64,000 bases of DNA from Macrostomum lignano (Eukaryota). Numbering within the stretch: position 1 is the first letter of the stretch; each line of letters opens with the position of its first letter. The position numbers and the translations under genes are program-made. The stretch is taken from the NCBI GenBank assembly GCA_002269645.1, contig NIVC01000106.1:434001-498000 (forward strand). The letters run 5' to 3'. Under the pieces are notes generated by a model. The model had not been told where the DNA came from, ran no database searches, and saw nothing but the letters and a program-made list of their open reading frames with translations. Positions 9,219-40,255 of the stretch are shown piece by piece.

Positions 9219-9306
<88 letters not shown>

Positions 9307-14406: not shown

Positions 14407-16974
14407 TTACCTTCTTAACTTAAAAATGTTGGCTATTGCCCCAAAAAAGACAGCACGCCTTGTGCGAACAAAACTTGACAGTCGATCAAAAACAAGCTTG
14501 CACTGAAATTGTTCGCAGATTGATAAAACAGACCGACGTGAGCTATCTCTGTCAGTGAGACAGTCTGGTCCGAGCTCGTTCACCAGCCACTCGAGTGATG
14601 AGCTGCTCACAGCATTGAAAGCAGCACAGTGCACTGCAGTCATGTTCTTCCATCCTCTCAGCTTGAAACACTCGACTCCATTCATCTTCTCTTTGATGAG
14701 CTGCATTGATTCCGCCTTCTGGAACTCAGCCGCAATGTGGATGACTGTGTCATTGTTTGCATCTCTGTCAGTGAGACAGTCTGGACCGAGCTCGTTCACC
14801 AGCCACTCGAGTGCTGAGCTGCTCACAGCATTGCCAGCAGCACAGTGCACTGCAGTCGTGTTGCAACTTTCTCTCAGCTGGAAACACTCGACTCCATTCA
14901 TCTTCTCTTTGATGAACTGCATTGATTCCGCCTTCTGGACAGAAGCCGCAATGTGGATGACTGTGCCATTGTCTGCATCTCTGTCAGTGAGACAGTCTGG
15001 TCCGAGCTCGTTCACCAGCCACTCGAGTGCTGAGCTGCTCACAGCATTGCCAGCAGCACAGTGCACTGCAGTCATTTTGTTCATTCTTCTCAGCTTGAAA
15101 CACTCGACTCCATTCATCTTCTCTTTGATGAACTGCATTGATTTCGCCTTCTGGAACTGAGCCGCAATGTGGATGACTGTGTCATTGTCTGCATCTCTGT
15201 CAGTGAGACAGTCTGGTCCGAGCTCGTTCACCAGCCACTCGAGTGCTGAGCTGCTCACAGCATTGCCAGCAGCACAGTGCACTGCAGTCATTTTGTTCAT
15301 TCTTCTCAGCTTGAAACACTCGACTCCATTCATCTTCTCTTTGATGAACTGCATTGATTTCGCCTTCTGGAACGCAGCCGCAACATGAATAACTGTGTCA
15401 CTGTTTGCATTTCTGTCAGTGAGACAACCTCGTCCGAGCTCGTTCACCAGCCACTCGAGTGTTGAGCTGCTCACTTCATTGCAAGCAGCCCAGTGCACTG
15501 TAGTCGTGTTGCAACATCCTCTCAGCTTGAAACACTCGACTCCATTCATCTTCTCTTTGATGAACTGCATTGATTCCGCCTTCTGGAACTGAGCCGCAAT
15601 GTGGATGACTGTGTTATTGTTAGCAGCTCTGTCAGTGAGACAGTCTGGTCCGAGCTCGTTCACCAGCCACTCGAGTGCTGAGCTGCTCACAGCATTAAAA
15701 GCAGCACAGTGCACTGCAGTCATGTTTTGCCTTCCTCTTAGCTTGAAACACTCGACTCCATTCATCTTCTCATTGATGAACTGCATTGATTCCGCCTTCT
15801 GGAACTCAGCCGCAATGTGGATGACTGTGTTATTGAATTGATCTCTGTCAGTGAGACAGTCTGGTCCGAGCTCGTTCACCAGCCACTCGAGTGCTGAGCT
15901 GCTCACAGCATTGCAAGCAGCCCAGTGCACTGCAGTCCTGTTGTTGAATCCTCTCAGCTTGAAACACTCGACTCCATTCATCTTCTCTTTGATAAACTGC
16001 ATTGATTCCGCCCTCTGGAACTCAGCCGCAGTGTGGATGACTGTTAAATGTTTTGCATCTCCGTCAGTGAGACAGTCTGGTCCGAGCTCGTTCACCAGCC
16101 ACTCGAGTGCTGAGCTGCTCACAACATTGCATGCAGCACGGTGCACTGAAGTCATGTTTTGCCTTCCTCTCAGCTTGAAACACTCGACTCCATTCATCTT
16201 CTCTTTGATGAACTGCATTGATTCCGCCTTCTGGAACTGAGCGGCAATGTGGATGACTGTGTCATTGTTTGCATCTCTGTCAGTGAGACAGTCTGGTCCG
16301 AGCTCGTTCACCAGCCACTCGAGTGTTGAGCTGCTCACTTCATTGCAAGCAGCACAATGCACTGCAGTCATGTTGTTAATTCCTCTCAGCTTGAAACACT
16401 CGACTCCATTCATCTTCTCTTTGATGAACTGCATTGATTCCGCCTTCTGGAACTCAGCCGCAGTGTGGATGACTGTGTTATTGTTTGCATCTCTGTCAGT
16501 GAGACAGTCCGCTTCGAGTTCGAACATCAGCCATTGGAATGTCGATCCATGATGTGTGAGATTCTCAGCTGCCCTATGCATCACTGTTTTCTGCCTGCTA
16601 TCTCTTGCTTCGAATGGGTTCCAGTCCGCTTCTGCTGCCTGCAGCTTCTGTTTCAGGAACTCCATCGTCTCCGCAGTCTGACTCTTCGCTGCCAGGTGAG
16701 TCACCGAGTCGCCATCGCTATCAACCAGCCGAAATATGTCGACCCCGTGCCCCATCTCCAGTAATCGAAGAACCGGCAGTCCGTCTCTGTGCCGAGCTGC
16801 AGCAAAAATGACGCCTTTGGCGAAGTCTTCTCCAGGTCCGACGATGCTCTCGGACACCTGGAACAGCAGATCATCAGTCAGCCGTTCGTCTCCGGCTGCT
16901 ACCGCCTGCTTGATCTGCCTAAAGAGATGCTGAGAGGCCTCGTATTCGCTGAACTCGCTGGGACTCAGAGCTCT
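14407..16974 (-). CDS. Ankyrin-repeat protein, large terminal exon (copy 1): divergent N-terminal repeats plus 9 x 72-aa di-ankyrin modules
   Basis: 816-aa ORF with repeated TxxHxAA motifs (TVIHxAA / TAVHxAA) and 216-bp periodicity. The track start at 16857 is GTG. The frame stays open for 39 more codons up to an acceptor-like site (minus strand CTAAT...TTCCGATTTCAG|AGA), so the exon probably starts at 16974 in phase 0. Confidence 0.9.
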   Translation of the reverse strand, partial: RALSPSEFSEYEASQHLFRQIKQAVAAGDERLTDDLLFQVSESIVGPGEDFAKGVIFAAARHRDGLPVLRLLEMGHGVDIFRLVDSDGDSVTHLAAKSQTAETMEFLKQKLQAAEADWNPFEARDSRQKTVMHRAAENLTHHGSTFQWLMFELEADCLTDRDANNNTVIHTAAEFQKAESMQFIKEKMNGVECFKLRGINNMTAVHCAACNEVSSSTLEWLVNELGPDCLTDRDANNDTVIHIAAQFQKAESMQFIKEKMNGVECFKLRGRQNMTSVHRAACNVVSSSALEWLVNELGPDCLTDGDAKHLTVIHTAAEFQRAESMQFIKEKMNGVECFKLRGFNNRTAVHWAACNAVSSSALEWLVNELGPDCLTDRDQFNNTVIHIAAEFQKAESMQFINEKMNGVECFKLRGRQNMTAVHCAAFNAVSSSALEWLVNELGPDCLTDRAANNNTVIHIAAQFQKAESMQFIKEKMNGVECFKLRGCCNTTTVHWAACNEVSSSTLEWLVNELGRGCLTDRNANSDTVIHVAAAFQKAKSMQFIKEKMNGVECFKLRRMNKMTAVHCAAGNAVSSSALEWLVNELGPDCLTDRDADNDTVIHIAAQFQKAKSMQFIKEKMNGVECFKLRRMNKMTAVHCAAGNAVSSSALEWLVNELGPDCLTDRDADNGTVIHIAASVQKAESMQFIKEKMNGVECFQLRESCNTTAVHCAAGNAVSSSALEWLVNELGPDCLTDRDANNDTVIHIAAEFQKAESMQLIKEKMNGVECFKLRGWKNMTAVHCAAFNAVSSSSLEWLVNELGPDCLTDRDSSRRSVLSICEQFQCKLVFDRLSSFVRTRRAVFFGAIANIFKLRR

Positions 16975-17699
16975 CTGAAATCGGAATAGGCAGATAGTTA
17001 TAATTAGTCTAGGGTAATTAAAGGCCTATGATATTGGCTGTGAAACTTAAGGACATATAGGTAAATTGGGAAGGGCAGAGCAGAAACATTTTCGCTCGGT
17101 TCGGTCGTGAGTGTCGTGCTATGTGACTGCAAAGTGGCAGAGCAGTTGTTTTCCGCTATCATGTTGATGGGCTGTGTAACAGGTAGGATTTTGTGTCCTG
17201 CCTGCCTGCACCTTCTGCTCACGTCGGATAACAAAGAATTGAACTCGAAGCACGGTTTTTCTGGGTCCAGGCTGCTGCGGCCTACAGCCCAGCCGAGGCA
17301 ATGGCCATGCCTTTAGGCCCGCAGATGCGGGCGAGAGAAAAGTGAAGCGAGCGCCTCCACTACTGTCTCTCCTTTTATTTAAAACACAGCAGAACAATCG
17401 CGTGGGAACGTAAACTCTTATAGGCTACATAGAACAAAATGCAAATTACGCAGCAAGTTTTAGGTGCAGCCGTCCTTCGCAAATATGACTGCATTCTATG
17501 CAGCTCATAGGCTGCCGTGTCATCACCTGGCAGCCTTTCCGACTTTTTTCGACATGATCTTTGTAGGTAAAGCGCGATATATGAGAAAGCACCATTTCTG
17601 TTTGTCCGTTGCTCAACTTGGTGGTGCCGCTATCTACACTTCCTATCAACGACGTCTACGAGTACTCTCTGCTTCGGCGGGGTGTATGCAGAAACTAGC

Positions 17700-18537
17700 A
17701 GAATTCGCGAGAGACAGCCGATGATATCGCCCTGCTGTCCTTTAACCTCTACGCGACAGGTGGTGCTTGGCATCACCCTTGTTGCCAACGGCTGTGCCGA
17801 AATCGGGACATAGACTATTTGACAGTCGCTACGAACAACTTTGTTAGTTTTCCTAGGAGCCACGTTGAAATCAATCAGACCATGGCCGGGTTCCATTTGA
17901 TTGCCGAACTGCCACATGTCATTGGTGTTATCGACTGCACAAATGTCGCTATCAAGAGTCCAACTAACAATGAGTATGTTTTTGAGAACAGAAAATCGTT
18001 TTATTCTATTAATGTTCAAGCTGTGTGCAGTGTCTCAATGTCATTCACGAACATTCTAGTACGCTGGCCGAGAAGTACACACGATTCTTTCATATTCAAC
18101 AACTCTGCATTAAAGGAGATTCTATCAGAAGTGTTAGTGGCAGTATTCCTCGTCGGTGATAGTGGATATCCTCTGAGACCATTTCTCATGAAGGTTTTCG
18201 ACACTCCAAAAGAGATGCAAGAGAGACCGACTTCAACCGGAGGCTGCGACAAACTCGGGTGAAAATAGAATGTTCATTCGGGATTCTAAAGTCTCGATTT
18301 TAATGCCTGAATCGTCATTCCGCAAGTCTCCGATTCCATCCGAGCAAGTTTTGCTTGATAATAAGCGCCTGTTTTGTGCTGCATAACATTGCGATCAACA
18401 GAGGAGTTCCACTGGTTGTGCCGATCCAGCCTGACATCAATGACGAACCGGAGGATGTTGGCGTCGATGATATTGGAGCTAGAAGAGCCGAGCGAATTCG
18501 CATCGTACATTTGATACAACATGCAAGTAATCAGTAA
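17700..18537 (+). pseudogene. PIF/Harbinger (HARBI1-like) DDE transposase relic, copy 1
   Basis: Motifs HVIGVIDCTNVAI, NRKSFYSINVQAVC, THDS, GDSGYPL, KIECSFGILKSRF and ACFVLHNI. Frameshift near 18230 and TAA at 18301-18303. Confidence 0.9.
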
Positions 18538-19860
18538 AGAGGCCCTGGAGCTGGGCCATTGTGGGCACGAGGTTGGCGGCGCGGTTGTTCCGGATTTCGG
18601 TCTGGAGCTCGAGCGGGAGGCGGTTCCAGAGTGCGTAGACGCGGCTGTCGAGGGTGCACGCGAGCTCACCTAGGCGGAGTAGCTGGCCGGTAGCGAGTCG
18701 GAGGGCGTCGGTGTAATTCTCGAGCTCATCCAAGTCGGAGGCGGAGCTGCAGTGAAGAGCGAAAAGGATCTGGAAGAAGGCGTTTTTCTGCTCCTGGGCA
18801 TCGGCGTAGTTGGCCTGGAGGACGCGGCAGGCTTCGGCGTAGGCGTTGGGCTGGCAAGCGTCGAGGGCGCCAAGCTTCCGGAGTGCCGAGCCAGAGTGAA
18901 GACCGCGGAGCGCCTCAAACTTATCGACGTCGTTGAGACTGGATTGGTCGACGTGGTAGAAGAAGGCGTTCCAGAACCCGGGGAATGCGGTGGGGTCGGT
19001 GCCGTCGAATGTCGGGAGACGAACCTTCTGGAGAACAGTGGAGTGGATTAGAGCGGCCGGATCGCTATCGCTGGTTGCGGACTACGACGCAGATTTCAGG
19101 GCAGGATGGGAATTAGCGGCGAGCTGTTGTATGAGCAGCTGATTCTGCTGCATCATGGCGGTCATAGCGGTCAGGAGGGCGTTGATATCGACGGAGGCAG
19201 CGGGAGCTGCTGCAGGGATCGCAGTTGTGGAAGGAGCAGCGGGAAGAGCAGATGTCGCGGCTGCTGAAGCAGCAGGCGGCGGGTCACTGGCTTTGACGTG
19301 CGGCTGCTCCGCGTCGATTGGCGCTTCAGCAGAGGCTGTGCTGTGGTCGTTCTTGGACTGCTTGATCTGGTCGCCAGATAGGTCAGTTGTTGATCGCGTG
19401 ATAACCATGGTAATCCGGACGCTCTGCTACCAATTTGTAGAATAGATTCGTCGAGGAAGAGAGAGGAACCACGCTCTGCTACCAATTTGTGGAAGTTGAC
19501 AATAAACTAATATTGAACGAGCGGTTAGCGGGGAAGGAATCAGTAGAAGAGAAGCAGAGGTGAAGGGCAGAAGCCGCGAGTTGAACTTGTATTTGTACTA
19601 ACACAGCGAACAGGGTAGCTGAAATGTCTGTGGCAAATTAACGGTTATGCTAGTCTGTGGGAAAAGCGTGGTAGACGAAGGGAGCCAGCTAACTGAAAAG
19701 TACGAGTCTTTATTGCAAAACAGAAAGTAGAAATATTTGAAGGATGAAATCGCCAAGACCTCGAATTTGACAAACTTGCTCGGATAGCTAATGAAGTCAG
19801 TGTTGCTGCCTGCAAGATAGGTGAAGAATTTCTACTTTCTAGACAAGCAGGTCATTAACA
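18538..19860 (-). mobile_element. BEL/Pao-type LTR retrotransposon 5' fragment (putative LTR 19488-19860, tRNA-iMet PBS, truncated gag)
   Basis: The gag from ATG 19408 has KVRLPTFDG..FWNAF...DKFEALRGL...AYAEA..VLQANY (DUF1759-like), with a premature stop at 19082-19084. PBS TGGTAGCAGAGCGTGGTT lies at 19484-19467. The LTR limits (TGTT...CACA) are tentative. Confidence 0.8.
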
Positions 19861-22135
19861 TGGAACTCTATCGCATCGCAGAACTGACACGGTGTCTTCG
19901 GCTGCGTCGACGGTCTCGCCCTGCTGTTATCAACTACAACAACAACTGTTCTCAACTAGTGATGAGGCGCTAACGAATGATGCTCGCCAATGGTGCCTCA
20001 TTCCTTTGGTTATTGCGCTTGTACTTTGCTTCCACAGCTTCTACTTAATAATTAATAATTAATAATAATTAATAACTAATAATATAACTACTTAATAATA
20101 ATAAGTCAAAGACTTTCTGCCACCCAGCTCAGCCTCAGACACTTCGAGATGTTAAATCAGCAAGCAGTGCGACTTGATGAAATATTGGCTTTCATGCTGA
20201 CCTGACATCCTTGATGCTGGATGCCATCAGAGTCCCATAACCATTTAAATATCTCGCTCGAGTGCAGGAAGGAAAGTCGCGTTGCAAGAACAGGCACTCC
20301 AGGAAAGCTTGAATAAATAAGCAACGCAATAATTGTACTTTATATCGACAATCATTTATTTATTTTGGATAAACGCAATAAAATATACTTATTATCAGTC
20401 AATGGGGTAGTGGGTGCATAATGTACAGAGACACAGCTTAATGATATTACGAGCTAAGTCGTAACCAAGTTACCAAGAACACAGGTGAGTCAACAATGAC
20501 TAAACGCATCCAGTCTTAGCGCGTTCATACGCTGGTGTGACATGCTGAACTTCTCAACACTTCTTGCAAGTCGCTCAGGCAACAGCCGAATGGTTGACAT
20601 ATGATGTCATGTGATCGCCCTTGCGGATCATGCAGGTCTGAAATGCTGCGACTCCGAGACGTCTCAAAGCGCCACTGAAATTCTTGTCATTGTCAACTTC
20701 GCGGCAGCTGTTGAGTACATCGCGCATAACACAAAAAACAGAGACTGCGGCATGACTCTCAGCCAAAGATGCAAAAATTACATTTCGTAATATTGCAGAG
20801 GGTGGACCCAAGTATAAGTACAAAGCCTAACAAAAAACTGCTTAGTTTTTTAATCTGAAAAATGGATTCAGATTACCTGATCACTATGAGAATCCGTGTA
20901 TTTAATAATGGCAATTATGCCGAATTTACGTAAAAATAAAAGTACACAACTTTGATGCTTTTATTACTGTAGAGATGAGGTATTAAAAGAGCAAAGTGCA
21001 CATTTTATGGATCAATTATGGAATAAGCTGAGTCGGCTGAGTCGCTTCATCAAACTGGCGCAGGCGCGGCTGTGAATGTTTTGTCAAAGTCTGCCGCAAT
21101 CATCGAGCAAACAAACTTTAAGTGACGCAACAGCGCGTCAGCGCTGGCAAAAGTGCGCAATAAAATTCAGTAAATTTTGCACTGCGTTCAAAACGGAGCA
21201 GCGAATTAAAGGCTCCCGCCTTCGCCAGTGCGCGGTTGCGAGAGCGACTGCTGTTCTCAGGCTCTCAGGCTACAGCAGCCTGGCCAATTATCGTGAAGGA
21301 AGGGATGACGGCAGGCAGGGAGGGGAGCAAGACTGGAGGATTGCGGTGATATTAAAGGTCAAACCTGAGCAAGATCTAATGAGTTTTGATTGCTTTGTAG
21401 AGGTTCATTCATTGAATGTTACTGTAAGTAGAACAATGCACACATTCGAAGCAAAACTTGAACTTCGTTAAGTTAAACTTAAACGTTACGCTCCAAAGAT
21501 CTTACGCTTGCTGGAGCAGCTAAGCGAGGCTACATCTCTGAGGGAAATAAATACTTTTCGGTAAGCCTTTGTTCGAGTCTTCGTTATTTGATTATTGAGA
21601 GCGATTTTATTGCCGGCCATTACTGATCAGTTGAATTACTGAGTTAATTGATTTTGATACCCTAGAGTAACCGATAGGGGCACACGACTCCGATTCGGTT
21701 ATTTCTAGAAGAAGACGCCCTTTCTGAAGGACGTCGTTATTGCTATGAAGTTGACTTTGTTATTAGGGCGCATCTCTGATAATTGACTTCTGCACTCGAG
21801 AAATTCTTCGACGTCGACGGATTAAATTGTAACGCGCTCACATTCGGCCGATTTTTAGAATTCAAGAAGACTACTCCGGAGGAAGACTCCATAGAAGACT
21901 ACGAGCCCTACGAACCTGCCCGACAAAGAAGAGGAGCCCGCACCCGTGAGTGATCACTGAATTTTGTTCCCAGGCTTAAGGTCTGGAAGTGAGAGTTTTC
22001 GGGTGACTGATCACCACCCGATTAAACTCTTCAGCTTGATGGCTTGATAATTTTGATAGTTCTTGTAGATAAATGCAAATTTTCAATTTCTACAGCACGG
22101 CAAACACAATAGACAGCCAGCTGCTTAGTACTCAC

Positions 22136-22238
22136 CTCAGCCATGGAGCTGCTCGAGTGCCTTCGGCTGCTCAAGGGCGGCTGAGTCGCTGCCGAGGTGC
22201 TGACAGAGCTGATGTGCTGCGCTGAGTTTGAGATGCGT
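22136..22238 (-). other. Candidate upstream exon (start ATG-GCT-GAG, M-A-E) for ankyrin gene copy 1
   Basis: Minus strand shows acceptor TCCATTCTCAG| at 22239, a 103-nt exon ending ...TCC ATG GCT GAG|GTGAGT (ATG 22144-22142, donor 22135). The phase-0 donor matches the phase-0 acceptor at 16974. Inference only, with no transcript evidence. Confidence 0.45.
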
Positions 22239-22278
22239 CTGAGAATGGAGGCGGGACTTACGATGACGGTGGTGTACA

Positions 22279-22717
<439 letters not shown>

Positions 22718-23545
22718 GGCACTCACCGGTTACTATTTGTGAACTGTGCTGTGAGGATTCAGAAGCAAAACAGTAAAGTTATGCCTGTGGCTTCTCTGCT
22801 CCAAAAAGCCAATGCAGTCTAAAAAAATTCTCGAGTATGCCTGAGGCCGATGTGAGCTGACGCGCTCCAAGAGGCCCCTTCTGCATCTCTTAAAGAGAAG
22901 CTCGAAACGAAGAAAGGCAGAAAAGAAGGCAGACAGAGAGAGCTGCAAGCAGATGGAGAACAATAGCGAGCTCAGCATCCATGCCCGCCTCTGTGCACCC
23001 AGCCTGATGAAGCTACTGTATTGAATTGAGCTGAACTGTTTTCAGATGCTCGGACAGGTAAAGGGCTGCCACTGCACTCATACGGTCTTGAGCATAGAGA
23101 CAGCTCTCTAGCCCCCTATGCTGTTGCTGGGCAGCTCAGACCCCAACCTCACAGAGGTGGAATCGAGCTCGGAGACGGAGTGCTGGGGAAGGCGGGGACC
23201 CCAAAGGTATTGAACTGAATGGTCAATTGAAATGACAGCAGTGCACAGTTTTAAAGCACAGTTGCACAGTTTAAATTTTGTACAAGCGATTCGGTAAGAC
23301 TTCGGTAAGAGAGTGTTTTCATATTTGAAAAAATGTCGAAAACGCTGCTTGCTATTCTTGCTCTAGAGAAGTGTGCTGGCTGTCTAATGGTGGGTGCGTT
23401 AGATAAGGGGCAAGGGGCTGCAGGTCGGGAATGCAGGTTTTCTGTTAGATCACAACTAAGGTCCTTACAGTACATTTTCATGTAATGACTCGCTAAAGTA
23501 AAAAAGTAATGAATAGTCCCTACGGTCAGAATCAGGAATCAGAAT

Positions 23546-26500
23546 TAGGGATCAGGATTGGGGATCTGGATTGGGGATCAGGATTAAGGATCAGGATTGG
23601 GGATCAGGATTGGGGATCAGGATTGAGGATCAGGATTGGGGATCAGGATTGGGGATCAGGATTGGGGATCAGGATTGGGGATCAGGATTGGGGATCAGGA
23701 TTGGGGATCAGGATTGGGGATCAGGATTGGGGATCAGGATTGGGGATCAGGATTGGGGATCAGGATTGGGGATCAGGATTGGGGATCAGGATTGGGGATC
23801 AGGATTGGGGATCAGGATTGGGGATCAGGATTGGGGATCAGGATTGGGGATCAGGATTGGGGATCAGGATAGACTATCAGGATAGACTATCAGGATTGGG
23901 TATCTGGATTGGGGATTAGGATTGGGTATCAGGATTGGGGATCAGGATTGGGGATCAGGATTGGGGATCAGGATTGGGGATCAGGATTGGGGATCAGGAT
24001 TGGGGATCAGGATTGGGAATCAGGATTGGGGATCAGGATTGGGGATCAGGATTGGGGATCAGGATTGGGGATCAGGATTGGGGATCAGAATTGGGGATCA
24101 GGATTGGGGATCAGGATTGGGGATCAGGATTGGGGATCAGGATTGGGGATCAGGATTGGGGATCAGGATTGGGGATTAGGATTGGGGATCAGGATTGGCG
24201 ATCAGGATTGGGGATCAGAATTGGGGATCAGGATTGGGGATCAGGATTGGGGATCAGGATTGGGGATCAGGATTGGGGATCAGGATTGGGGATCAGGATT
24301 GGGGATCAGGATTGAAGATCAGGATTGGGGATCAGGATAGACTATCCGGATAGACTATCGGGATAGACTATCAGGATTGGGGATCTGGATTGGGGATTAG
24401 GATTGGGTATCAGGATTGGGGATCAGGATTGGGGATCAGGATTGGGGATCAGGATTGGGGATCAGGATTGGGGATCAGGATTGGGGATCAGGATTGGGGA
24501 TCAGGATTGGGGATCAGGATTGGGGATCAGGATTGGGGATCAGGATTGGGGATGGAGATTGAGGATCAGGATTGGGGATCAGGATTGGGGATCAGGATTG
24601 GGGATGGAGATTGAGGATCAGGATTGGGGATGGAGATTGAGGATCAGGATTGGGGATGGAGATTGAGAATCAGGATTGGGGATCAGGATTGGGGATCAGG
24701 ATTGGGGATCAGGATTGGGGATCAGGATTGGGGATCTGGATTTTGGGATTAGGATTGGGGATCAAGATTGGGGATCAGGATTGGGGATCAGGATTGGGGA
24801 TCAGGATTGGGGATCAGGATAGACTATCAGGATAGACTATCAGGATTGGGTATCTGGATTGGGGATCTGGATTGGGGATTAGGATTGGGTATCAGGATTG
24901 GGGATCAGGATTGGGGATCAGGATTGGGGATCAGGATTGGGGATCAGGATAGACTATCAGGATTGGGGATCAGGATTGGGGATCAGGATTGGGAATCAGG
25001 ATTGGGGATCAGGATTGGGGATCAGGATTGGGGATCAGGATTGGGGATCAGGATTGGGGATCAGGATTGGGGATCAGGATTAAAGATCAGGATTGGGGAT
25101 CAGGATTGGGGATCAGGATTGGGGATCAGGATTGGGGATCAGGATTGGGGATCAGGATTGGGGATCAGGATTGGGGATCAGGATTGGGGATCAGGATTGG
25201 GGATCAGGATTGGGGATCAGGATTGGGGATCAGGATTGGGGATCAGGATTGGGGATCAGGATTGAAGATCAGGATTGGGGATCAGGATAGACTATCAGGA
25301 TAGACTATCAGGATAGACTATCAGGATAGACTATCAGGATAGACTATCAGGATAGACTATCAGGATAGAAAATCAGGATTGGGGATCTGGATTGGGGATT
25401 AGGATTGGGTATCAGGATTGGGGATCAGGATTGGGGATCAGGATTGGGGATCAGGATTGGGGATCAGGATTGGGGATCAGGATTGGGGATCAGGATTGGG
25501 GATCAGGATTGGGGATCAGGATTGGGGATCAGGATTGGGGATCCGGATTGGGGATCAGGATTGGGGATCAGGATTGGGGATCAGGATTAGGGATCAGGAT
25601 TGGGGATCAGGATTGGGGATCAGAATTGGGGATCAGGACTGGGGATCAGGATTGGGGATCAGGATTGGGGATCAGGATTGGGGATCAGGATTGAAGATCA
25701 GGATTGGGGATCAGGATAGACTATCAGGATAGACTATCAGGATAGACTATCAGGATAGACTATCAGGATAGACTATCAGGATAGACTATCAGGATAGACA
25801 ATCAGGATTGGGGATCTGGATTGGGGATTAGGATTGGGTATCAGGATTGGGGATCAGGATTGGGGATCAGGATTGGGGATCAGGATTGGGGATCAGGAGT
25901 GGGGATCAGGATTGGGGATCAGGATTGGGGATCAGGATTGGGGATCAGGATTGGGGATCAGGATTGGGGATCAGGATTGGGGATCAGAATTGGGGATCAG
26001 GATTGGGGATCAGAATTGGGGATCAGAATTGGGGATCAGGACTGGGGATCAGGATTGGGGATCAGGATTGGGGATCAGGATTGGGGATCAGGATTGAAGA
26101 TCTGGATTGGGGATCAGGATAGACTATCAGGATAGACTATCAGGATAGACTATCAGGATAGACTATCAGGATAGACTATCAGGATAGACTATCAGAATAG
26201 TCTATCAGGATAGACTATCAGGATTGGGGATCTGGATTGGGGATTAGGATTGGGTATCAGGATTGGGGATCAGAATTGGGGATCAGGATTGGGGATCAGG
26301 ATTGGGGATCAGGATTGAGGATCAGGATGGACTTTTAGGATAGACTATCAGGATTGGGGATCTGGATTGGGGATTAGGATTGGGGATCAGGATTGGGGAT
26401 CAGGATTGAAGATAAGGATTGGGGATCAGGATAGACTATCAGGATAGACTATCAGGATAGACTATCAGGATTGACTATCAGGATAGACAATCAGGATTGG

Positions 26501-28522
26501 GGATCAGGATTGAGGATCAGGATGGACTATCAGGATAGACTATCAGGATTGGGGATCTGGATTGGGGATTAGGATTGGGGATCAGGATTGGGGATCAGGA
26601 TTGAAGATAAGGATTGGGGATCAGGATTGGGGATCAGGATTGGGGATCAGGATTGGGGATCAGGATTGGGGATCAGGATTGGGGATCAGGATTGGGGATC
26701 AGGATTGGGGATCAGGATTGGGGATCAGGATTGGGGATCAGGATTAAAGATCAGGATTGGGGATCAGGATTGGGGATCAGGATTGGGGATCAGGATTGGG
26801 GATCAGGATTGGGGATCAGGATTGGGGATCAGGATTGGGGATCAGGATTGAAGATCAGGATTGGGGATCAGGATTGGGGATCAGGATTGGGGATCAGGAT
26901 TGGGGATCAGGATTGGGGATCAGGATTGGGGATCAGGATTGAAGATCAGGATTGGGGATCAGGATTGGGGATCAGGATAGACTATCAGGATAGACTATCA
27001 GGATTGGGGATCTGGATTGGGGATTAGGATTGGTTATCAGGATTGGGGATCAGGATTGGGGATCAGGATTGGGGATTAGGATTGGGGATCAGGATTGGGG
27101 ATCAGGATTGGGGATCAGGATTGGGGATCAGGATTAGGGATCAGGATTGGGGATCAGGATTGGGGATCAGGATTGGGGATCAGGATTGGGGATCAGGATT
27201 GGGGATCAGGATTGGGGATCAGGATTGGGGATCAGGATTGGATCAGGATTGGGGATCAGGATTGGGGATCAGGATTGGGGATCAGGATTGGGGATCAGGA
27301 TTGGGGATCAGGATTGGGGATCAGGATTGAAGATCAGGATTGGGGATCAGGATAGACTATCAGGATAGACTATCAGGATAGACTATCAGGATTGGGTATC
27401 TGGATTGGGGATCTGGATTGGGGATTAGGATTGGGTATCAGGATTGGGGATCAGGATTGGGGATCAGGATTGGGGATCAGGATTGGGGATCAGGATAGAC
27501 TATCAGGATTGGGGATCTGGATTGGGGATTAGGATTGGGGATCAGGATTGGGGATCAGGATTGGGGATCAGGATTGGGGATCAGGATTGGGGATCAGGAT
27601 AGACTATCAGGATAGACTATCAGGATTGGGTATCTGGATTGGGGATCTGGATTGGGGATTAGGATTGGGTATCAGGATTGGGGATCAGGATTGGGGATCA
27701 GGATTGGGGATCAGGATAGACTATCAGGATTGGGGATCAGGATTGGGGATCAGGATTTGGGATCAGGATTGGGGATCAGGATTGGGGATCAGGATTGGGG
27801 ATCAGGATTGGGGATTAGGATTGGGGATCAGGATTGGGATCAGGATTGGGATCAGGATTGGGGATCAGGATTGGGGATCAGGATTGGGGATCAGGATTGG
27901 GGATCAGGATTGGGGATCAGGATTGGGGATCAGGATTGGGGATCAGGATTGGGGATCAGGATTGGGGATCAGGATTGGGGATCAGGATTGGGGATGGAGA
28001 TTGAGGATCAGGATTGGGGATCAGAATTGGGGATGGAGATTGAGGATCAGGATTGGGGATCAGGATTGGGGATCAGGATTGGGGATCAGGATTGGGGATC
28101 AGGATTGGGGATCAGGATTGGGGATCAGGATTGGGGATTAGGATTGGGGATCAGGATTGGGGATCAGGATTGGGGATCAGGATTGGGGATCAGGATTGAA
28201 GATCAGGATTGGGGATCAGGATAGACTATCAGGATAGACTATCGGGATAGACTATCAGGATTGGGGATCTGAATTGGGGATCAGGATTGGGGATGGCGAT
28301 TGAGGATCAGGATTGGGGATGAGCACGGAGGATCTGGATTGGGAATCAGGATTGGGGATCAGGATTGGGGATCAGGATTGGGGATCAGGATTGGGGATCA
28401 GGATTGGGGATCAGGATTGGGGATCAGGATTGGGGATCAGGATTGGGGATCAGGATTGGGGATCAGGATTGGGGATCAGGATTGGGGATCAGGATTGGGG
28501 ATCAGGATTGGGGATCAGGATT
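23546..28522. repeat. 13-bp minisatellite (GGGGATCAGGATT)n, expanded ~5 kb allele with (GATAGACTATCAG)n sub-arrays
   Basis: Same flanks as 6416-7286. GATAGACTATCAG runs occur only in this copy. Confidence 0.98.

Positions 28523-30322: not shown

Positions 30323-30323
<1 letters not shown>

Positions 30324-30393
<70 letters not shown>
30324..30393. repeat. (CT)n microsatellite
   Basis: Perfect CT run of ~70 bp. Confidence 0.98.
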
Positions 30394-30395
<2 letters not shown>

Positions 30396-31700: not shown

Positions 31701-32082
31701 TTGTCATTGTGAGGGACCGGCTGGAACGACACTGCGAGGCCCCGGTGCTGCCAGCCTACACCAAGGGCAGGAGCCTCCGGGAGTTGCTCTGCCGCAGTCG
31801 GCTCGAACCTGCCAATTAACATATTCAGGTATTTTTGCTCTCCCTACTCTGCGTTTTTTCTGCTCCTCTGCCATTGTTTGTACTTGTTTGTTGACTCTGT
31901 CACCTTGTGCGGTGCGGTAACTCTTTCTACGCAACGTTTATTTCTTACCTATTTAATTTTTTTGTTTTACATTATCGGGTGATATTCTATTTGGAAATAT
32001 CTTATTTGACATTTAAATGTCGGTAAGGCCTTTGTTTTTTATTCTATTTATTTTGATCTATTACTCATCATACTCAATCTAT

Positions 32083-32369
32083 GTATCCCCCTTTTGCCCC
32101 GGGCGAGTGTCTATGTGACGCATGTTTTCATTTATTTCCCTAGGTGAATAAATCATTTATTTCCCGCTGCCCCGCGGGCTGATAAATTCGAGACAACAAC
32201 CATAGACAACGAACGGGGGATACATATCATATTCCCCACTCATTTAGCTGTCTAGGGCCAAAAGCACTCGGTGTCTCGATCATTGACCTCGGCTTCGCCT
32301 CGGTCAATAAACGAGACACCTCTTGCTTTTGCCCGCTAGACAACAAAATAAATGGGGAATATATACCAT
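32083..32369. mobile_element. 287-bp insertion of two adjacent palindromic (fold-back) modules, MITE/non-autonomous Crypton-like
   Basis: Absent at the homologous sites of copies 1 and 3. Module 1 has ATGTATCCCCC...GGGGGATACAT (32081-32225). Module 2 is a long hairpin TATTCCCCA...TGGGGAATA with a CTCGGCTTCGCCTCG core. Only an AT dinucleotide is repeated at the ends. Confidence 0.75.
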
Positions 32370-32647
32370 TTATTTTGCCAATTTATAGTTCTCGTATATT
32401 TCTCTATGTACTATCGTATTTTAATTTTTACAATCAATCTTTGCCATAGCTTGACTGCGCATTTGGGGCAAAAAAATGTGCGCCTCTCTCCCAGTAATGA
32501 AAATGGCAGTCCAGCACCCATCCTCAGGATTCCCTGTTGCCACCTTGATGCCACCCTCGGTGCCTTTCCTTTTCCCCTCCTAAACTGATGATTTTAAATA
32601 TTCTGCTTTTGTTTTAAACTCGCAGCATCCCCACTTTCTGTACTTCA

Positions 32648-33305
32648 TCGAGGCTGCTATTTTCTGCCGAGGCGCCGACGGACAAGCGACGAAGCTTCCG
32701 TGCTGTCAGCAGTTCGTCTACCTCGGCTGTCTGGTGCCTGACGTTTGCGAGGACCTGCGACGTCTTCGTGGACTTGCCTGGGCTGCTTTCCGTTCCGTGA
32801 GGGTTGTCCTGCAGTCCGAGGCGCTGCCCGACTGCCAGAGGGCGGCGTTGTTCCAGGTGGTAATCGAGACCGTCCTGCTGTACAACGCCGAGACCTGGAC
32901 GCTGACGGATTCGCTCGAACAGCTGGTCGATGCGGCGCATGCTGGCCTGCTGCGCGCCGCCTTCAACATCGGCTACGAGCGAGTGACCAATGCGGCACTC
33001 TATCGCCGCACCGGCCTGTCCCGCCCCAGCGAACTGTTGCGCCGTCGGCGACTCCAGCTGGCAGGCCAGTTCATCCGAGCCGAGTCGTACTGCTCACAGC
33101 CGGTGCAGGAGGTGCTGCTACTGACGCTACAGGCACCCTACCGGCGGGGACAGGCGCGTACTCGGCGTTTCGTCGACTGCCTGCTGGCTGATGCCGGCGC
33201 CCCGGACAACTGCCGGCGGCGCCGCCTAGGTTCGCGCCCAGGCCTTGAAACGCGCCTTGTGACATTGTCTGCTAACTGATTGACAACGTATTTTGTTGTT
33301 GTTGT
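32648..33305 (+). mobile_element. RTE-type LINE A, uninterrupted allele (empty site for LINE B)
   Basis: TSD TGTACTTCA at 32639-32647 and 33306-33314. A single TGATTGACAAC is present at 33277-33287. Confidence 0.9.
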
Positions 33306-34139
33306 TGTACTTCAGAAATATTCATACAAACGGATCAAGCGGCTCGAATATGCATGTGCTCTGCGCGAGGTTTATTGGCCAGACTTTTAACCATTTGGAA
33401 GCCAAAGGCCTGCACTGCAGGCCATATCGAAACGGCCCAAAAATCCAGAGATTGAACAATTTCTATGGCATCAAAAACCATCTCCCAATCACTAAAGCAA
33501 CTGCCCAGTATGGCCTGCTGTGCAGGTCATGATTGATTTAAAGAAGTCCATTGTGCATTTCCGTTATGTTTTCACTCAAATGTTAAAGGTGAAATAAGCG
33601 TGTGCAGTGAAAATGAGGTGATGCACAAATGTATGTTTTGGTCGTATTAAATGTAGCTAACTTTAATCACTTCACTTTCGTCTGGATTTTCTGGTAGATC
33701 GATGCTTGGATTGATGGTAGAAACCCTCGGAATTCCGGCACCCCGTCATGGTCAAACGAGTTGTCATTTCGACCCTTTCTTACTGGGTCCAGGGGGCTAA
33801 TTCAACCCATTCCGCGGTCGCCTCATCTTGGCTCTCATCAGTTTCTGGATCCATACTTTCCGACTCCGTTTCTGACTCAAAAACCGTCGAGTCATCGCTT
33901 GATAAGCGTCTTCCGAATCGGAATCGAGTCCCAGTCTGCGCAAGGCGTCACTTTTAGCTGTCCTTATCGGGCGCGTAGAAGCAATTTGTGGGTAGGAAGG
34001 TTTGAACAGGAGCTAGCAGAAAAAGTCTGTGGTATACTTTACTTCTGGGCTTCTAGGGTGTGCACTCGATTCAGCAAAAAGGACAAATTTGTCTATGGAC
34101 TGCTGTGCAGGAGGTGATATCAGATATTTGGCAATAATG

Positions 34140-35142
34140 GTTGGTTATTCGTAAATGAGACTTTAGGATAATAGTCCGGCTCATGAGTGCGCGCTATGAG
34201 GACTATTATCCTAAAGTCTCACTTACGAATAACCGCATTGTCGAATTTCAGTGGGGCCATAGACAAAAAGGGCATCGAAAGGAGAGAGGGGTTACCGAGG
34301 AGAGAGAGACATAAAGACTGAGGTGGTTTACTGGAGTTTGGGCCATAGACAACGAAGTTGCAAACAGGCTGGGGGTTAAGAGGGTGGAAAGGAAGGAGAT
34401 GTGGAGAGAAAGAGAGATTAAAACGTAAATAGCTACATTCGCTTGGCCATGGAGAACCAGACGTCATATCCGATCAACTGGGGCAATCTGCCTGTCGAAA
34501 GTTTAGCCAACGTATCTAGCAGCGAACTCAATTGGATCTCAATACTTTCCACATCTCAGAAGGACATGAAGGATAACGAAGACTTTTTGAACTTCTTGCA
34601 CTTTCTTGAGACCTGGAATCGGCTGGGCATTCGATGAGCGAGATCATGGCTATCACGGGTCAAAAGTCCGAGAGCACGGTCCGGCGCTACCTGGCAGTTA
34701 AACGGGACAAGTCCCTGCAACAATGCAGCGATGCAGTGTCGCGTGCGTTGAACATGGGACAAAGCGCCGCGACCCACGGTCAAGTAACAATGCCTACTGA
34801 CATCAGCATCCAAAGTTCCATCGTGCAAGAAGCAGTGAGCGTGTCTGATGGTCGTCAGATGAACGGTCGGAATATCTTTATTATGAACAACTGCACTTTC
34901 AACAATTGCAATCTGTAATGGTCTTCGGCACTATGACAATTGCGCCATATTGATACTGCACAATTAACTTTCCATAGCGCTAATCTTTTGTTGTTGGTGT
35001 TTGCTGTTTTGTTCTAAAAATAGGTGTCCATTATCCCGAGTTTGAAATCATTATCCTGAAGTTTAAGTGAAAAAATAAATAAATGTGCTCATGGTTTAAC
35101 CATAGACGATTGCATTATCCTAAAGGCTGATTTTTGACAATG
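34140..35142 (+). mobile_element. Crypton-like (tyrosine recombinase) internally deleted element
   Basis: 1003-bp insertion absent from copies 1 and 3, bounded by a direct AATG repeat with no TIRs. It encodes LESAGHSMSEIMAITGQKSESTVRRY (tyrosine-recombinase box II ending at Tyr 34688-34690) and a C-terminal NNCTFNNC. It also has a 35-bp-arm hairpin at the left end. Confidence 0.72.
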
Positions 35143-37687
35143 AAGCTGAACTTGTGCTAAACGGCTCTGTTTTGTTTCAAACTGCTTTCTGTCTGCGTAG
35201 CAATGGATAAATAATCAGCGGTCCCAGTGTCGTGCTGCGACCGCTGATTATTTGCATTGTTATGCTGCTTGATCATCCTACAAACAATGCATTGTTAGTA
35301 GTAATATATTGTTCTGCATAAAAATGTAAATAATGATCGTCAAATTGCTAGACAATGAATGGAGGCTTCACGTGCGACAGATTTTGTAGCTATTTTGAGG
35401 AATTCGTGTAGAAAGACATCACCACAAGTTTCGATTTTGAATTACAAAATGTACATTTCATGTATCTGAATTGCGTGTATCTGCAAGTTCAGCTTATTTC
35501 ATTTTTATATTTATTAGTCGATTTTCGTTGCAAAAATACTTTCGGCTCATATCTGTGCAGCGAGAAAATTACATATCATTTGCAGCTTAAAATTGGAGGA
35601 GCATAATACGGCATGTGCATCTACTTGTACGAGTACTATGTGAAATTATGTTGTGTATGAACGAGTATATAGTGTGCCAGGATTCCAAGAGTGAACTGAG
35701 TGTAAAAGTGTGAGTGTGAGAGAGACAGTGAGAAAGTGAGTGTGAGGGAGTGAGTGAAAAAGTGAATGAGTGAGTGAGTGTGAGAGAGTGAGTGTGAGAG
35801 AGTGAGGGTTAGTTAAATTTCCAACACAATTCAATTTACAATAAAATTCAACTTACAATAAAGTTCTATTTCCAAAACAAGTAAACATAAAAACACTTCA
35901 ATTTCATACAATACAAAAACCGGCGGGTTTTTGTATTTTTGGGTCCAGTTGGTTTTCAAACCTTCATCAGTCACCTGAGCAAAAGTGCCTGTCTGGGCGA
36001 AGTTTTAAGGGCACTTTTTCTAATCCAGCCATTGGCCGATGTCAGGGACTCTGTCCGAGATATCAATAATTGAATAGCGACGCATGCAGGAGGGGGGATA
36101 TTTCTGCGTATGGGAATTCTTAATCACTTTGATTATTTATAAAACATAAAATACAGGGACATACATACAACAAAACAATTTTTATGGAAGCAATCATGCT
36201 AGCTACTGGCTCCGGTTTAAGACGGGTTTTAAGATCAGAAAGCCAAATTCATATAGAGAGAAATAGCTATAGCTAGCTAATTAGAAAATATAGGAAATCA
36301 GCACTTGCTTAATAATAATAACGCTGAAGTGCTTGATAAAATGTCCATAATTGGGTCATTTTGGGAGATTTATAAATTGAATAACATAAGGGAGAGTTCC
36401 GCCTCCGCCAGCGTACGCCACTATAGCTATATACATTCAATATCGAGCAAAATATTATTTAAACATATTGTGACCAACATAGCTGAATCCCACACATAAA
36501 CAAACCCAAAAAAGGAGAATATCGTAAAACCTAAGTTAAATCTATTAGTTAAAATTTGATAATGCAAGGCTTAGCTATTGTGAGGAAACTCAAGGGGTCA
36601 GAAGTCTCAACAATTGAATGACAGAATTCAATGTGTAGGCAAGGGTGAACTATTAAGATACCAGTAAAGCTAAATAACAGTTAATAACAACTAATTCACT
36701 AGGATTGGCAATTTGATTCCATTAGCTACACGAAAACGAAGCACAAAAAAGCCCACAGGAAAGCAAATTCACTTGGTTAAACTGAGTATCGATGAAATGA
36801 GAAATATGATTATGGATCATGCTAAAGCAAATGAATGTAACATAAAATAAGAGATATCAATATCAATTTAAAGCCAAAAACTGACTTCAAACTTAAAACA
36901 GGGTTTAATCATGGAGGAAAGAATCTATTCATGGCTTTAATATGTTATCAAATAATTCTTCATAGGTTTCGACAGTTCTCAAAAAAATCAGGCAAAGGAA
37001 AATGTGAGAATTACAATATTCTAATTAACTCACTTCTAAATTAATACTCTGTAACCATTATTTAGTAGTAAAATCGATTTAACTAATAAAACAAAAAGGA
37101 TAAAAAAATCAGCATTTAAAAGTCCACTTCAGTAGCATTTATTGGTATCCCACAGAATGCAACTACTCGTATTACTACGAGTAACACAAACAGGATTAGC
37201 AATGTCAATAAACTGATCAGCATTTAAAGGTTCTATTTATCAGCATTTTGCAGTCGCTACGAGTATACATAAACCACAGAAAATACACAGAAAAGTTAGT
37301 CAGCTCTCTCGCACAGAACCTGCTGATGTAGCAAGTTTGCTTTATACCTCTTTTAATTGATTAGGAGACATGCTTATACCACGAGCTAACAAAGAATAGC
37401 AGTTGAAGTCGCATGGTGGTTTACCAATAGCTATAACAATTATTTAAGTTTTCTAACAAATTTACTAGAATACTCGCAATTTTACCAGATGTATCTCATC
37501 CTTGATTTTCAAAAGAAATAATTTCGAACTCACTTGTTTCAAGCCAGTTTAAAGCTAGTTTTAGTAACCAACTTAAACAACCAACCATTCCATGCATTAT
37601 TCTGTGGTACTACCATGACATTGACAATATTAACAACAGAAACTTCCAGAACAAGGTACCGTCTGTTGCCTTGCCTATGGCCTAAAA

Positions 37688-40255
37688 TTACCTTCTTAAC
37701 TTAAAAATGTTGGCTATTGCCCCAAAAAAGACAGCACGCCTTGAGCGAACAAAACTTGACAGTCGATCAAAAACAAGCTTGCACTGAAATTGTTCGCAGA
37801 TTGATAAAACAGACCGACGTGAGCTATCTCTGTCAGTGAGACAGTCTGGTCCGAGCTCGTTCACCAGCCACTCGAGTGCTGAGCTGCTCACAGCATTGAA
37901 AGCAGCACAGTGCACTGCTGTCATGTTCTTCCATCCTCTCAGCTTGAAACACTCGACTCCATTCATCTTCTCTTTGATGAACTGCATTGATTCCGCCTTC
38001 TGGAACTCAGCCGCAATGTGGATGACTGTGTCATTGTTTGCATCTCTGTCAGTGAGACAGTCTGGACCGAGCTCGTTCACCAGCCACTCGAGTGCTGAGC
38101 TGCTCACAGCATTGCCAGCAGCCCAGTGCACTGCAGTCCTGTTGATCATTCCTCTCAGCTTGAAACACTCGACTCCATTCATCTTCTCTTTGATGAACTG
38201 CATTGATTCTGCCTTCTGGACAGAAGCCGCAATGTGGATGACCGTCAAGTTATCTGCATCTTTATCAGTGAGACAGTCTGGTCCGAGCTCGTTCACCAGC
38301 CACTCGAGTGCTGAGCTGCTCACAGCATTGCCAGCAGCACAGTGCACTGCAGTCATTTTGTTCATTCTTCTCAGCTTGAAACACTCGACTCCATTCATCT
38401 TCTCTTTGATGAACTGCATTGATTTCGCCTTCTGGAACGCAGCCGCAACGTGAATAACTGTGTCACTGTTTGCATTTCTGTCAGTGAGACAACCTCGTCC
38501 GAGCTCGTTCACCAGCCACTCGAGTGCTGAGCTGCTCACTTCATTGCAAGCAGCCCAGTGCACTGTAGTCGTGTTGCAACATCCTCTCAGCTTGAAACAC
38601 TCGACTCCATTCATCTTCTCTTTGATGAACTGCATTGATTCCGCCTTCTGGAACTCAGCCGCAATGTGGATGACTGTGTTATTGTTAGCAGCTCTGTCAG
38701 TGAGACAGTCTGGTCCGAGCTCGTTCACCAGCCACTCGAGTGCTGAGCTGCTCACAGCATTAAAAGCAGCACAGTGCACTGCAGTCTTGTTTTGCCTTCC
38801 TCTTAGCTTGAAACACTCGACTCCATTCATCTTCTCATTGATGAACTGCATTGATTCCGCCTTCTGGAACTGAGCCGCTATGTGGATGACTGTGTTATTG
38901 AATTGATCTCTGTCAGTGAGACAGTCTGGTCCGAGCTTGTTCACCAGCCACTCGAGTGCTGAGCTGCTCACAGCATTGCAAGCAGCCCAGTGCACTGCAG
39001 TCCTGTTGTTGAATCCTCTCAGCTTGAAACACTCGACTCCATTCATCTTCTCTTTGATGAACTGCATTGATTCCGCCTTCTGGAACTCAGCCGCAATGTG
39101 GATGACTGTGTCATTGTCTGCATCTCTGTCAGTGAGACAGTCTGGTCCGAGCTCGTTCACCAGCCACTCGAGTGCTGAGCTGCTCACAGCATTGCAAGCA
39201 GCCCAGTGCACTGCAGTCCTGTTGTTGAATCCTCTCAGCTTGAAACACTCGACTCCATTCATCTTCTCTTTGATGAACTGCATTGATTCCGCCCTCTGGA
39301 ACTCAGCCGCAGTGTGGATGACTGTTAAATTTTTTGTATCTCCGTCAGTGAGACAGTCTGTTCCGAGCTCGTTCACCAGCCACTCGAGTGCTGAGCTGCT
39401 CACAGCATTGCATGCAGCACGGTGCACTGAAGTCATGTTTTGCCTTCCTCTCAGCTTAAAACACTCGACTCCATTCATCTTCTCTTTGATGAACTGCATT
39501 GATTCCGCCTTCTGAAACTGAGCCGCAATGTGGATGACTGTGTCATTGTTTGCATCTCTGTCAGTGAGACAGTCTGGTCCGAGCTCGTTCACCAGCCACT
39601 CGAGTGTTGAGCTGCTCACTTCATTGCAAGCAGCACAATGCACTGCAGTCATGTTGTTAATTCCTCTCAGCTTGAAACACTCGACTCCATTCATCTTCTC
39701 TTTGATGAACTGCATTGATTCCGCCTTCTGGAACTCAGCCGCAGTGTGGATGACTGTGTTATTGTTAGCATCTCTGTCAGTGAGACAGTCCGCTTCGAGT
39801 TCGAACATCAGCCATTGGAATGTCGATCCATGATCTGTGAGATTCTCTGCTGCCCTATGCATCACTGTTTTCTGCCTGCTATCTCTTGCTTCGAATGGGT
39901 TCCAGTCCGCTTCTACTGCCTGCAGCTTCTGTTTCAGGAACTCCATCGTCTCCGCAGTCTGACTCTTTGCTGCCAGGTGAGTCACCGAGTCGCCATCGCT
40001 ATCAACCAGCCGAAATATGTCGACCCCGTGCCCCATCTCCAGTAATCGAAGAACCGGCAGTCCGTCTCTGTCCCGAGCTGCAGCAAAAATGACGCCTTTG
40101 GCGAAGTCTTCTCCAGGTCCGACGATGCTCTCGGACACCTGGAACAGCAGATCATCAGTGAGCTGTTCGTCTCCGTCTGCTACTGCTTGATGGATCTGCC
40201 TATAGAGATGCTGGGATGCCTCGTATTCGCTGGACTCGCTGGGACTCAGAGCTCT
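37688..40255 (-). CDS. Ankyrin-repeat protein, large terminal exon (copy 2), 9 x 72-aa modules
   Basis: 816-aa ORF 37688-40138 plus 39 open codons up to the same acceptor (CAG at 40258-40256). No stops or frameshifts. Confidence 0.9.
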   Translation of the reverse strand, partial: RALSPSESSEYEASQHLYRQIHQAVADGDEQLTDDLLFQVSESIVGPGEDFAKGVIFAAARDRDGLPVLRLLEMGHGVDIFRLVDSDGDSVTHLAAKSQTAETMEFLKQKLQAVEADWNPFEARDSRQKTVMHRAAENLTDHGSTFQWLMFELEADCLTDRDANNNTVIHTAAEFQKAESMQFIKEKMNGVECFKLRGINNMTAVHCAACNEVSSSTLEWLVNELGPDCLTDRDANNDTVIHIAAQFQKAESMQFIKEKMNGVECFKLRGRQNMTSVHRAACNAVSSSALEWLVNELGTDCLTDGDTKNLTVIHTAAEFQRAESMQFIKEKMNGVECFKLRGFNNRTAVHWAACNAVSSSALEWLVNELGPDCLTDRDADNDTVIHIAAEFQKAESMQFIKEKMNGVECFKLRGFNNRTAVHWAACNAVSSSALEWLVNKLGPDCLTDRDQFNNTVIHIAAQFQKAESMQFINEKMNGVECFKLRGRQNKTAVHCAAFNAVSSSALEWLVNELGPDCLTDRAANNNTVIHIAAEFQKAESMQFIKEKMNGVECFKLRGCCNTTTVHWAACNEVSSSALEWLVNELGRGCLTDRNANSDTVIHVAAAFQKAKSMQFIKEKMNGVECFKLRRMNKMTAVHCAAGNAVSSSALEWLVNELGPDCLTDKDADNLTVIHIAASVQKAESMQFIKEKMNGVECFKLRGMINRTAVHWAAGNAVSSSALEWLVNELGPDCLTDRDANNDTVIHIAAEFQKAESMQFIKEKMNGVECFKLRGWKNMTAVHCAAFNAVSSSALEWLVNELGPDCLTDRDSSRRSVLSICEQFQCKLVFDRLSSFVRSRRAVFFGAIANIFKLRR

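Follow-up and report, generated by a model that had tools for sequence, protein, structure and literature searches.

The window analysed here comprises 64,000 nucleotides of Macrostomum lignano DNA (contig NIVC01000106.1, positions 434,001 to 498,000) and carries on its minus strand two copies, A and B, of a gene encoding an ankyrin (ANK) repeat protein. Each copy occupies its own unit of a segmental duplication arranged in tandem, with a unit of ~23 kb and at least three units. We consider it likely that the two are paralogues in tandem, lying 23 kb from each other, of an ANK gene that is apparently without introns and whose modules recombine in register while the framework is kept under constraint and the contact residues are diversified. 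Each copy contains an open reading frame (ORF) of 816 codons, laid out as 117 N-terminal residues, nine modules of 72 aa and a tail of 51 aa, with each 72-aa (216-bp) module consisting of two ANK repeats. The period of 72 residues is exact for 'CLTD' in both ORFs, and Tandem Repeats Finder gives, at 14545-16509 and 37826-39790, a period of 216, a copy number of 9.1 and matches of 90-91%. A preliminary description of this DNA had given both copies as in frame, with nine modules and 816 aa, which the ORFs and the 72-residue period bear out; it had also listed the loop signatures of copy A in the order GIN-GRQ-GFN-GRQ-GCC-RMN-RMN-ESC-GWK and those of copy B in the order GIN-GRQ-GFN-GFN-GRQ-GCC-RMN-GMI-GWK, and we obtain the same orders.

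The reading frame remains open for 39 codons beyond each 816-codon ORF, as far as a splice acceptor (16974 in copy A, 40255 in copy B), so that the N-terminal region of the full exon of 855 codons spans 156 aa and includes a diverged module 0; counting this module each copy has ten modules, and nine without it. In either copy an in-frame stop lies 17 codons upstream of the acceptor, and no ATG is found between this stop and the ORF. The spliced leader of M. lignano terminates in ...TTGCATG (PMC8629364), and trans-splicing of this leader at the acceptor may supply an in-frame ATG ahead of the first exon codon AGA, which would give a protein starting with M-RALSPSEF.... At the other end of the gene, the TAA stop overlaps a donor-like AAG/GTAATT on the minus strand, at 14405-14412 (near 37686-37693 in copy B). 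If this donor were spliced the ORF would run on into a further downstream exon, a candidate for which was not found within the window. The arrays also contain ORFs of 129-205 aa on the opposite strand (Table 1), which are unlikely to be genes and are repetitive by-products of the stop-free antisense frame in each module.

A Pfam scan of the 816-aa ORF returned ANK families (Ank_2, E = 7e-49, with 10 stretches) and other short matches that were spurious, and detected no NACHT, NB-ARC or effector domain. No protein kinase was matched in the protein by Pfam, and no kinase-like coding sequence was found in the whole window by tblastn. The AlphaFold2 (AF2) model shows a continuous ANK solenoid with helix pairs every ~36 residues (pLDDT 87.5, pTM 0.71), in which the N-terminal 156 aa are also helical and ANK-like. 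The best Foldseek matches in the PDB were the 24-repeat AnkB (4rlv, E = 1e-27), AnkR and NOMPC (5vkq), and a search of the PDB by sequence gave nothing beyond a weak generic ANK match (NOMPC).

All ten strong protein matches are hypothetical ANK proteins of M. lignano (P0001-P0010) and, because they come from a single species, the family appears to be lineage-specific. The best of them, BOX15_Mlig034366g1 (P0001; phmmer E = 4e-217, 51% identity across 82% of the query), is encoded by a single exon with its own ATG, present in one copy at its locus. When aligned, P0001-P0010 show the same 72-aa double-ANK periodicity and invariant framework columns, and copies A and B fit the framework of this module (D..G.T..H.AA..Q...SM.FIK.K.G..CF...G....T..H.AA.N..S.S.L.WLV.ELG..CL). 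A hidden Markov model of the module recognises 5-9 modules in the relatives, versus nine plus the diverged module 0 in copies A and B, and four of the relatives (P0007-P0010) carry a C-terminal protein kinase, which copies A and B lack. Mean identity between modules over 648 aa is 83.3% for copy A and 84.5% for B (maximum 93%), against 38-49% within the relatives. Every one of the nine modules best resembles the same module of P0001 (aa 510-581), without positional orthology, and at the DNA level each module of the window matches the P0001 gene on NIVC01002363.1 (L001:11579-11760) with 72-75% identity. Because of this shared resemblance to one module, the array is taken to have been amplified or homogenised from one module type after the split from the P0001 lineage. 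A look-up of the exact protein for further copies gave no record, and a literature search covering both the M. lignano homologues and the ANK genes of Macrostomum, function included, found nothing relevant.

We compared the modules of the two copies at the nucleotide level. Out of 216 nt, 1, 5, 3, 3, 2, 1 and 3 are different in the collinear pairs A1-B1, A2-B2, A3-B3, A4-B5, A5-B6, A6-B7 and A9-B9, respectively, against 9-31 between paralogous modules. As these seven pairs remain near-identical orthologues and the paralogous modules stay apart, concerted evolution has not acted wholesale after the gene was duplicated. The block GRQ'-GCC-RMN is shifted by one module between the copies, and at its edges lie two chimeric modules without a partner, A7 and B4. 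A7 is identical to A6 (RMN) over nt 54-216 and differs from it at nine sites in nt 16-53; it shares none of seven A6-specific sites in its 5' part and all four in its 3' part (split 1/330, hand calculation). Likewise, B4 equals B3 (GFN) over nt 63-216 apart from 202A and has nine differing sites in nt 13-62, sharing none of eight B3-specific sites in the 5' part and all four in the 3' part (split 1/495, hand calculation). The first 62 nt of B4 correspond to the consensus plus 22G; over these 62 nt A7 and B4 differ solely at nt 52, and both have 22G (N to D), as has module 8. A7 can be read as A8 (nt 1 to ~45) joined to A6 (nt ~45 to 216), leaving 3 mismatches, at nt 29, 52 and 53, with the breakpoint at nt ~44-51. 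A one-step unequal crossover between B3 and B5 was considered as the origin of B4 and ruled out, as no fewer than 7 mismatches are left, with five located in the hairpin. The tree of nt 1-62 disagrees with that of nt 63-216 in the manner of these mosaics, and it likewise places A8 and B8 together at the 5' end, where the 3' tree puts each with different modules. The mosaicism below the module level that the preliminary description had suspected is thus evident from the split patterns and from the trees, and the exchange of Q and E between neighbouring modules that it had noted is real, corresponding to nt 52 (G/C) in codon 18 of A4/B5 and A5/B6.

In module 8, A8 and B8 differ at 17 sites versus 2.6 expected (Poisson P = 2e-9). 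The first hairpin (nt 12-33) holds eight of these sites and the second (nt 115-153) another eight, with a single one at nt 66 and the rest of the two modules identical, including the module-8 markers 52-55 TCTG, 160G and 210T. Replacement of the whole module, as proposed earlier on the basis of the ESC and GMI loops, is therefore not what is observed, with 16 of the 17 differences in two patches, although the change of loop itself stands. In B8, nt 12-33 contain six private changes seen in no other module. Because four of these six are synonymous, the patch more probably stems from conversion by a donor other than the two genes than from selected point mutations. In its second loop, A8 shares with the GCC module A5/B6 five derived sites in a row (128G 129T 130T 131G 137C), and the second-loop patch of B8 has 137G and 153G in common with GFN modules.

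We then asked where the differences between modules fall. Taken over 11 non-redundant modules, dN/dS is 1.0 overall. A partition of sites by their observed variability was dropped as circular and replaced with position sets fixed beforehand. The binding surface of the hairpin and helix 1 is made up of ANK positions 2, 3, 5, 10, 13 and 33 (PMC4308713), which in the module correspond to codons 5, 7, 8, 10, 15, 18, 41, 43, 44, 46, 51 and 54. At these binding codons dN/dS is 2.40, versus 0.46 elsewhere; 11 of the 12 are variable (p = 4e-5), and non-synonymous and synonymous variant alleles stand at 38:4, compared with 23:18 at the other codons (Fisher p = 4e-4). For designed ankyrin repeat proteins (DARPins), the positions reportedly given by Binz et al. 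in 2003 are 2, 3, 5, 13, 14 and 33, and with this set dN/dS is 2.10 versus 0.53, with 10 of 12 codons variable. The density of synonymous variants is the same inside and outside the DARPin set (0.33 and 0.30 per codon), so that the contrast does not reflect a mutational hot spot. In the secondary structure of the AF2 model, codons 5-10 and 42-46 lie in hairpins or loops and codons 15, 18, 51 and 54 in inner helices. The differences between modules thus bear the signature of diversifying selection at predicted contact residues and fall on the ANK binding surface, in agreement with the earlier suggestion of new binding surfaces, and the array would display different binding patches in series on one invariant scaffold.

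The comparison between the copies concerns constraint. The proportions of synonymous and non-synonymous differences are 0.033 (pS) and 0.012 (pN), a ratio of 0.36 (binomial p = 0.003), and no small indel is present in 2352 bp of orthologous coding sequence, versus about 5.5 expected, the flanks having 2.3 gap openings for every kb (P = 0.004). Because of both observations the two genes look functional and constrained on framework and reading frame, and selection on the reading frame, already invoked in the preliminary description, gains support from them as purifying selection. The evidence for selection lies in these contrasts, between synonymous and non-synonymous changes and between gene and flank indels, and not in the equal length or the intact frame of the arrays. 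Frame is kept automatically when a 216-bp unit recombines in register, so that equal length and an intact frame after gain or loss of modules are mechanical consequences of such recombination and, against what had been proposed, are no sign of selection.

How the two arrays came to differ can be proposed from the chimeric modules. Because the modules are ~90% identical in DNA, they would misalign and recombine in register. The simplest reading is that the order of copy B is ancestral, since A7 fits an exchange between neighbours and B4 does not. Copy A would then have lost a B4-like module and gained A7, a fusion of the 5' end of module 8 with the 3' end of RMN, which would be the canonical product of unequal exchange between RMN and module 8. 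The loss would be scarless if the crossover fell within the 3' 154 nt that GFN and B4 have in common (one difference, 202A). Loss and gain may represent two unequal exchanges, or one out-of-register conversion tract extending from module 4 to module 7/8; a single shifted tract would move GRQ'-GCC-RMN by one module, make the exact A7 chimera and keep the length. The preliminary description had proposed a different history, in which RMN was doubled in copy A and GFN in copy B, independently and after the gene duplication, with selection holding the number at nine. This account, which we regard as unlikely, agrees with the nine modules of both arrays, with the presence in each of one unpaired module whose 3' two-thirds match its upstream neighbour, and with the nine recognisable modules likewise found in the two closest relatives without a kinase. 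Nevertheless, B4 is not the expected product of unequal exchange between B3 and B5, and the fit is as good or better with reciprocal losses out of an array of ten, or with a single shifted conversion in copy A. Equal length needs no selection on module number, because it arises about half the time from two independent changes of one module and always from a shifted conversion tract; moreover, family members carry 5-9 modules, compared with nine plus module 0, ten in all, in the copies studied here.

Two further explanations were considered. The repeats could be young and lie in non-functional or dying copies, with the clustered variability reflecting relaxed constraint at the surface of the protein, as the overall dN/dS of 1.0 between modules, the exon without an ATG and the position of the genes amid satellites and relics of transposable elements might suggest; an intact ORF in both copies is also not improbable at about 1-3% divergence. 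We consider such neutral decay very unlikely, given the between-copy dN/dS and the lack of small indels described above, a framework dN/dS below 1 alongside a value above 1 at binding positions with equal synonymous density, and the conservation of the framework in M. lignano relatives, which stand at 51% identity. Alternatively, errors of assembly could have produced the order of the modules or the tandem duplication as such, through misjoining of near-identical repeats or placement of haplotypes in tandem. Modules are ~90% identical and duplication units about 97-99% identical, and Macrostomum genomes are known for haplotype redundancy in their assemblies (PMC10468722). However, the contig resolves a 5-kb minisatellite of 13-mers and 4.2 kb of (ACAG)n, implying long reads that easily span an array of 1.9 kb; the 9-31 sites that distinguish modules make them individually recognisable; the units differ structurally, in satellite lengths, in a reverse transcriptase fragment and in a 332-bp insertion; and collinear modules diverge at the rate of the flanks, all of which makes an artefact highly improbable.

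The reading that we prefer, of functional paralogues with in-register recombination and diversified contacts, has points against it as well. The gene model hinges on a putative splice or trans-splice, as the exon has no ATG, and module order was taken from the assembly sequence. With just two copies in view and no outgroup copy, the events are not polarised and one event is inseparable from two. The pairwise homoplasy index (PHI) test was weak and inconsistent, with p from 0.0035 to 0.58 depending on the set used (18 modules and subsets), and for this reason the case for recombination was built on explicit breakpoints and tree discordance. Informative sites are few, and recurrent mutation at codons under selection could account for part of the mosaicism. 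Finally, dN/dS above 1 depends on 12 codons and on pairwise comparisons that are not independent.

The duplication units that surround the genes (Table 1) measure about 23-28 kb and are 96.7-99.1% identical in their flanks, varying in the length of (ACAG)n, of the 13-mer minisatellite and of a 238-bp satellite. The minisatellite, with the 13-mer ATCAGGATTGGGG, accounts for the extreme GC skew at 24-28 kb and for the long artefactual plus-strand ORFs in that region. The 332-bp insertion upstream of copy A is not present in copy B and occurs once in the window, and it may be a young non-autonomous element in a putative promoter or outron. A fragment of a non-LTR (long terminal repeat) retrotransposon bearing RVT_1 (9279-10603, 61566-62893) is found in units A and C and is missing in unit B. 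Its two RVT_1 ORFs, of 421 and 445 aa, are distinguished by a frameshift, and the relic has 59-74% identity to reverse transcriptases of M. lignano and at most 80% to environmental sequences. The transposable element relics had been described as full of stops; relics they are, although they are better described as shortened fragments, namely the RVT_1 ORFs, a DDE_Tnp_4 piece of 147 aa and a DUF1759 match below threshold. Each unit also has one ORF of 131 aa with an ATG start and no Pfam match. Rfam and tRNA scans of the window gave no matches, and no further ANK fragments were found in it.

Table 1 Features of the 64,000-nt window.
Feature	Position	Strand	Remarks
Copy A ORF	14407-16857	-	816 codons
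Copy A open exon	14407..16974	-	855 codons + stop; exon start at 16974, TAA at 14407-14409
Polypyrimidine tract and CAG acceptor, copy A (ctatctgcctattccgatttcag)	16975..16997	-	immediately upstream of copy A open frame
Array A1-A9	14563..16506	-	9 x 216 bp; A1 = 16291-16506, A9 = 14563-14778
Module A7	14995..15210	-	chimeric, no partner
Module A8	14779..14994	-	second-ANK loop ESCNT
Copy B ORF	37688-40138	-	816 codons
Copy B open exon	37688..40255	-	855 codons + stop; architecture as copy A
Polypyrimidine tract and CAG acceptor, copy B	40256-40278	-	equivalent of copy A acceptor
Array B1-B9	37844..39787	-	B1 = 39572-39787, B9 = 37844-38059
Module B4	38924..39139	-	chimeric, no partner
Module B8	38060..38275	-	
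Antisense ORFs within arrays	14555-15160, 15851-16240, 37836-38453, 38460-38873, 38916-39515	+	129-205 aa
Duplication unit A	1..22719		
Duplication unit B	roughly 21039-45756		
Duplication unit C	roughly 43938-64000		window end precedes its expected ANK gene
(ACAG)n microsatellite	1310-5552, 22279-22681, 45178-45756, 57353-57963		at the corresponding site of every unit; length 0.4 kb to 4.2 kb
13-mer minisatellite	6407-7286, 23538-28522, 58818-59632		about 0.8 kb to 5 kb across units
8.4-kb satellite	46886-55249		238-bp unit, 474-477-bp higher-order periodicity; third unit only
332-bp insertion	17175-17506		5-bp direct repeats GGCTG on both sides; ~200 bp upstream of copy A acceptor
DDE_Tnp_4 transposase fragment, Harbinger/PIF-type	17819..18262	+	147 aa; ~850 bp upstream of copy A
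DDE_Tnp_4 counterpart	40823-41203		~850 bp upstream of copy B
RVT_1 ORFs	9353-10618, 61640-62977	-	421 and 445 aa
Weak DUF1759 (gag-associated) match	41663-42358	-	231-aa ORF; 21.6 bits, under Pfam cut-off of 25.4 bits
131-aa ORFs	38-433, 21076-21471, 43975-44370		one per unit

What such an array is for can be proposed only tentatively. The tandem array could conceivably be a flatworm-specific repertoire of cytosolic recognition proteins, diversified by in-register exchange of modules among many paralogues and by diversifying selection on DARPin-like positions, a NOD-less animal counterpart of the fungal receptors with highly internally conserved (HiC) repeats, with the kinase-bearing relatives possibly as signalling partners; we think it doubtful that this whole proposal is correct. 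The proteins may, for instance, recognise non-self, or partner proteins that evolve rapidly. Near-identical modules, hypervariable contacts and in-register shuffling together are a known fast route to new binding specificities, with the best documentation in fungal NLRs. The genus Macrostomum has transgenesis and RNA interference, and a flatworm family with a HiC-like signature would be a tractable animal case for finding out what such arrays recognise.

The closest parallel is found in fungi. The ANK, TPR and WD repeats of HiC type in the NOD-like receptors (NLRs) of Podospora anserina and other fungi are ~85% identical within a gene (Dyrka et al. 2014, PMC4986451), are shuffled and exchanged inside single paralogues and from one to another, and have hypervariable, positively selected sites on the concave ANK face, in the beta-hairpin and the inner helices, whereas in metazoans HiC repeats are rare, amounting to 0.8% of repeats of the ANK, TPR and WD classes (PMC4986451). 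The flatworm modules resemble them in being 83-85% identical over 648 aa, where HiC conservation means about 85% over at least 100 aa, exchanged in register and hypervariable at sites of the concave surface. In contrast to the fungal NLRs, the flatworm copies have no NACHT or NB-ARC and no effector domain, the shuffled unit is the 72-aa double-ANK module instead of a single 33-aa repeat, and the host is an animal. Polymorphism in repeat number is not seen between these two copies, which have nine modules each, with different contents. Furthermore, most of the flatworm modules stayed collinear after the gene duplication, which points to a slower turnover.

Within M. lignano, copies A and B have in common with P0001-P0010 the double-ANK period, the framework motifs, a similar N-terminal region and the overall length, and with P0001 also the single-exon gene. 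They are set apart by their similar, recently amplified or homogenised modules, those of the relatives being old and diverged, and from P0001 by its own ATG and its single copy at the locus. The long uninterrupted solenoid of about 20-24 repeats recalls the membrane-binding domain of AnkB and AnkR and the ANK spring of NOMPC, although identity to these is just 15-17% and their repeats are old, diverged and conserved in number. The invariant framework with diversity at hairpin and helix-1 positions recalls the DARPin and ANK-N5C libraries, an analogy of design only, as DARPins are synthetic and built from single 33-aa modules with 2-5 internal repeats. The pattern seen in the flatworm arrays is thus one already known from fungal immune receptors, and the mechanism is not new.

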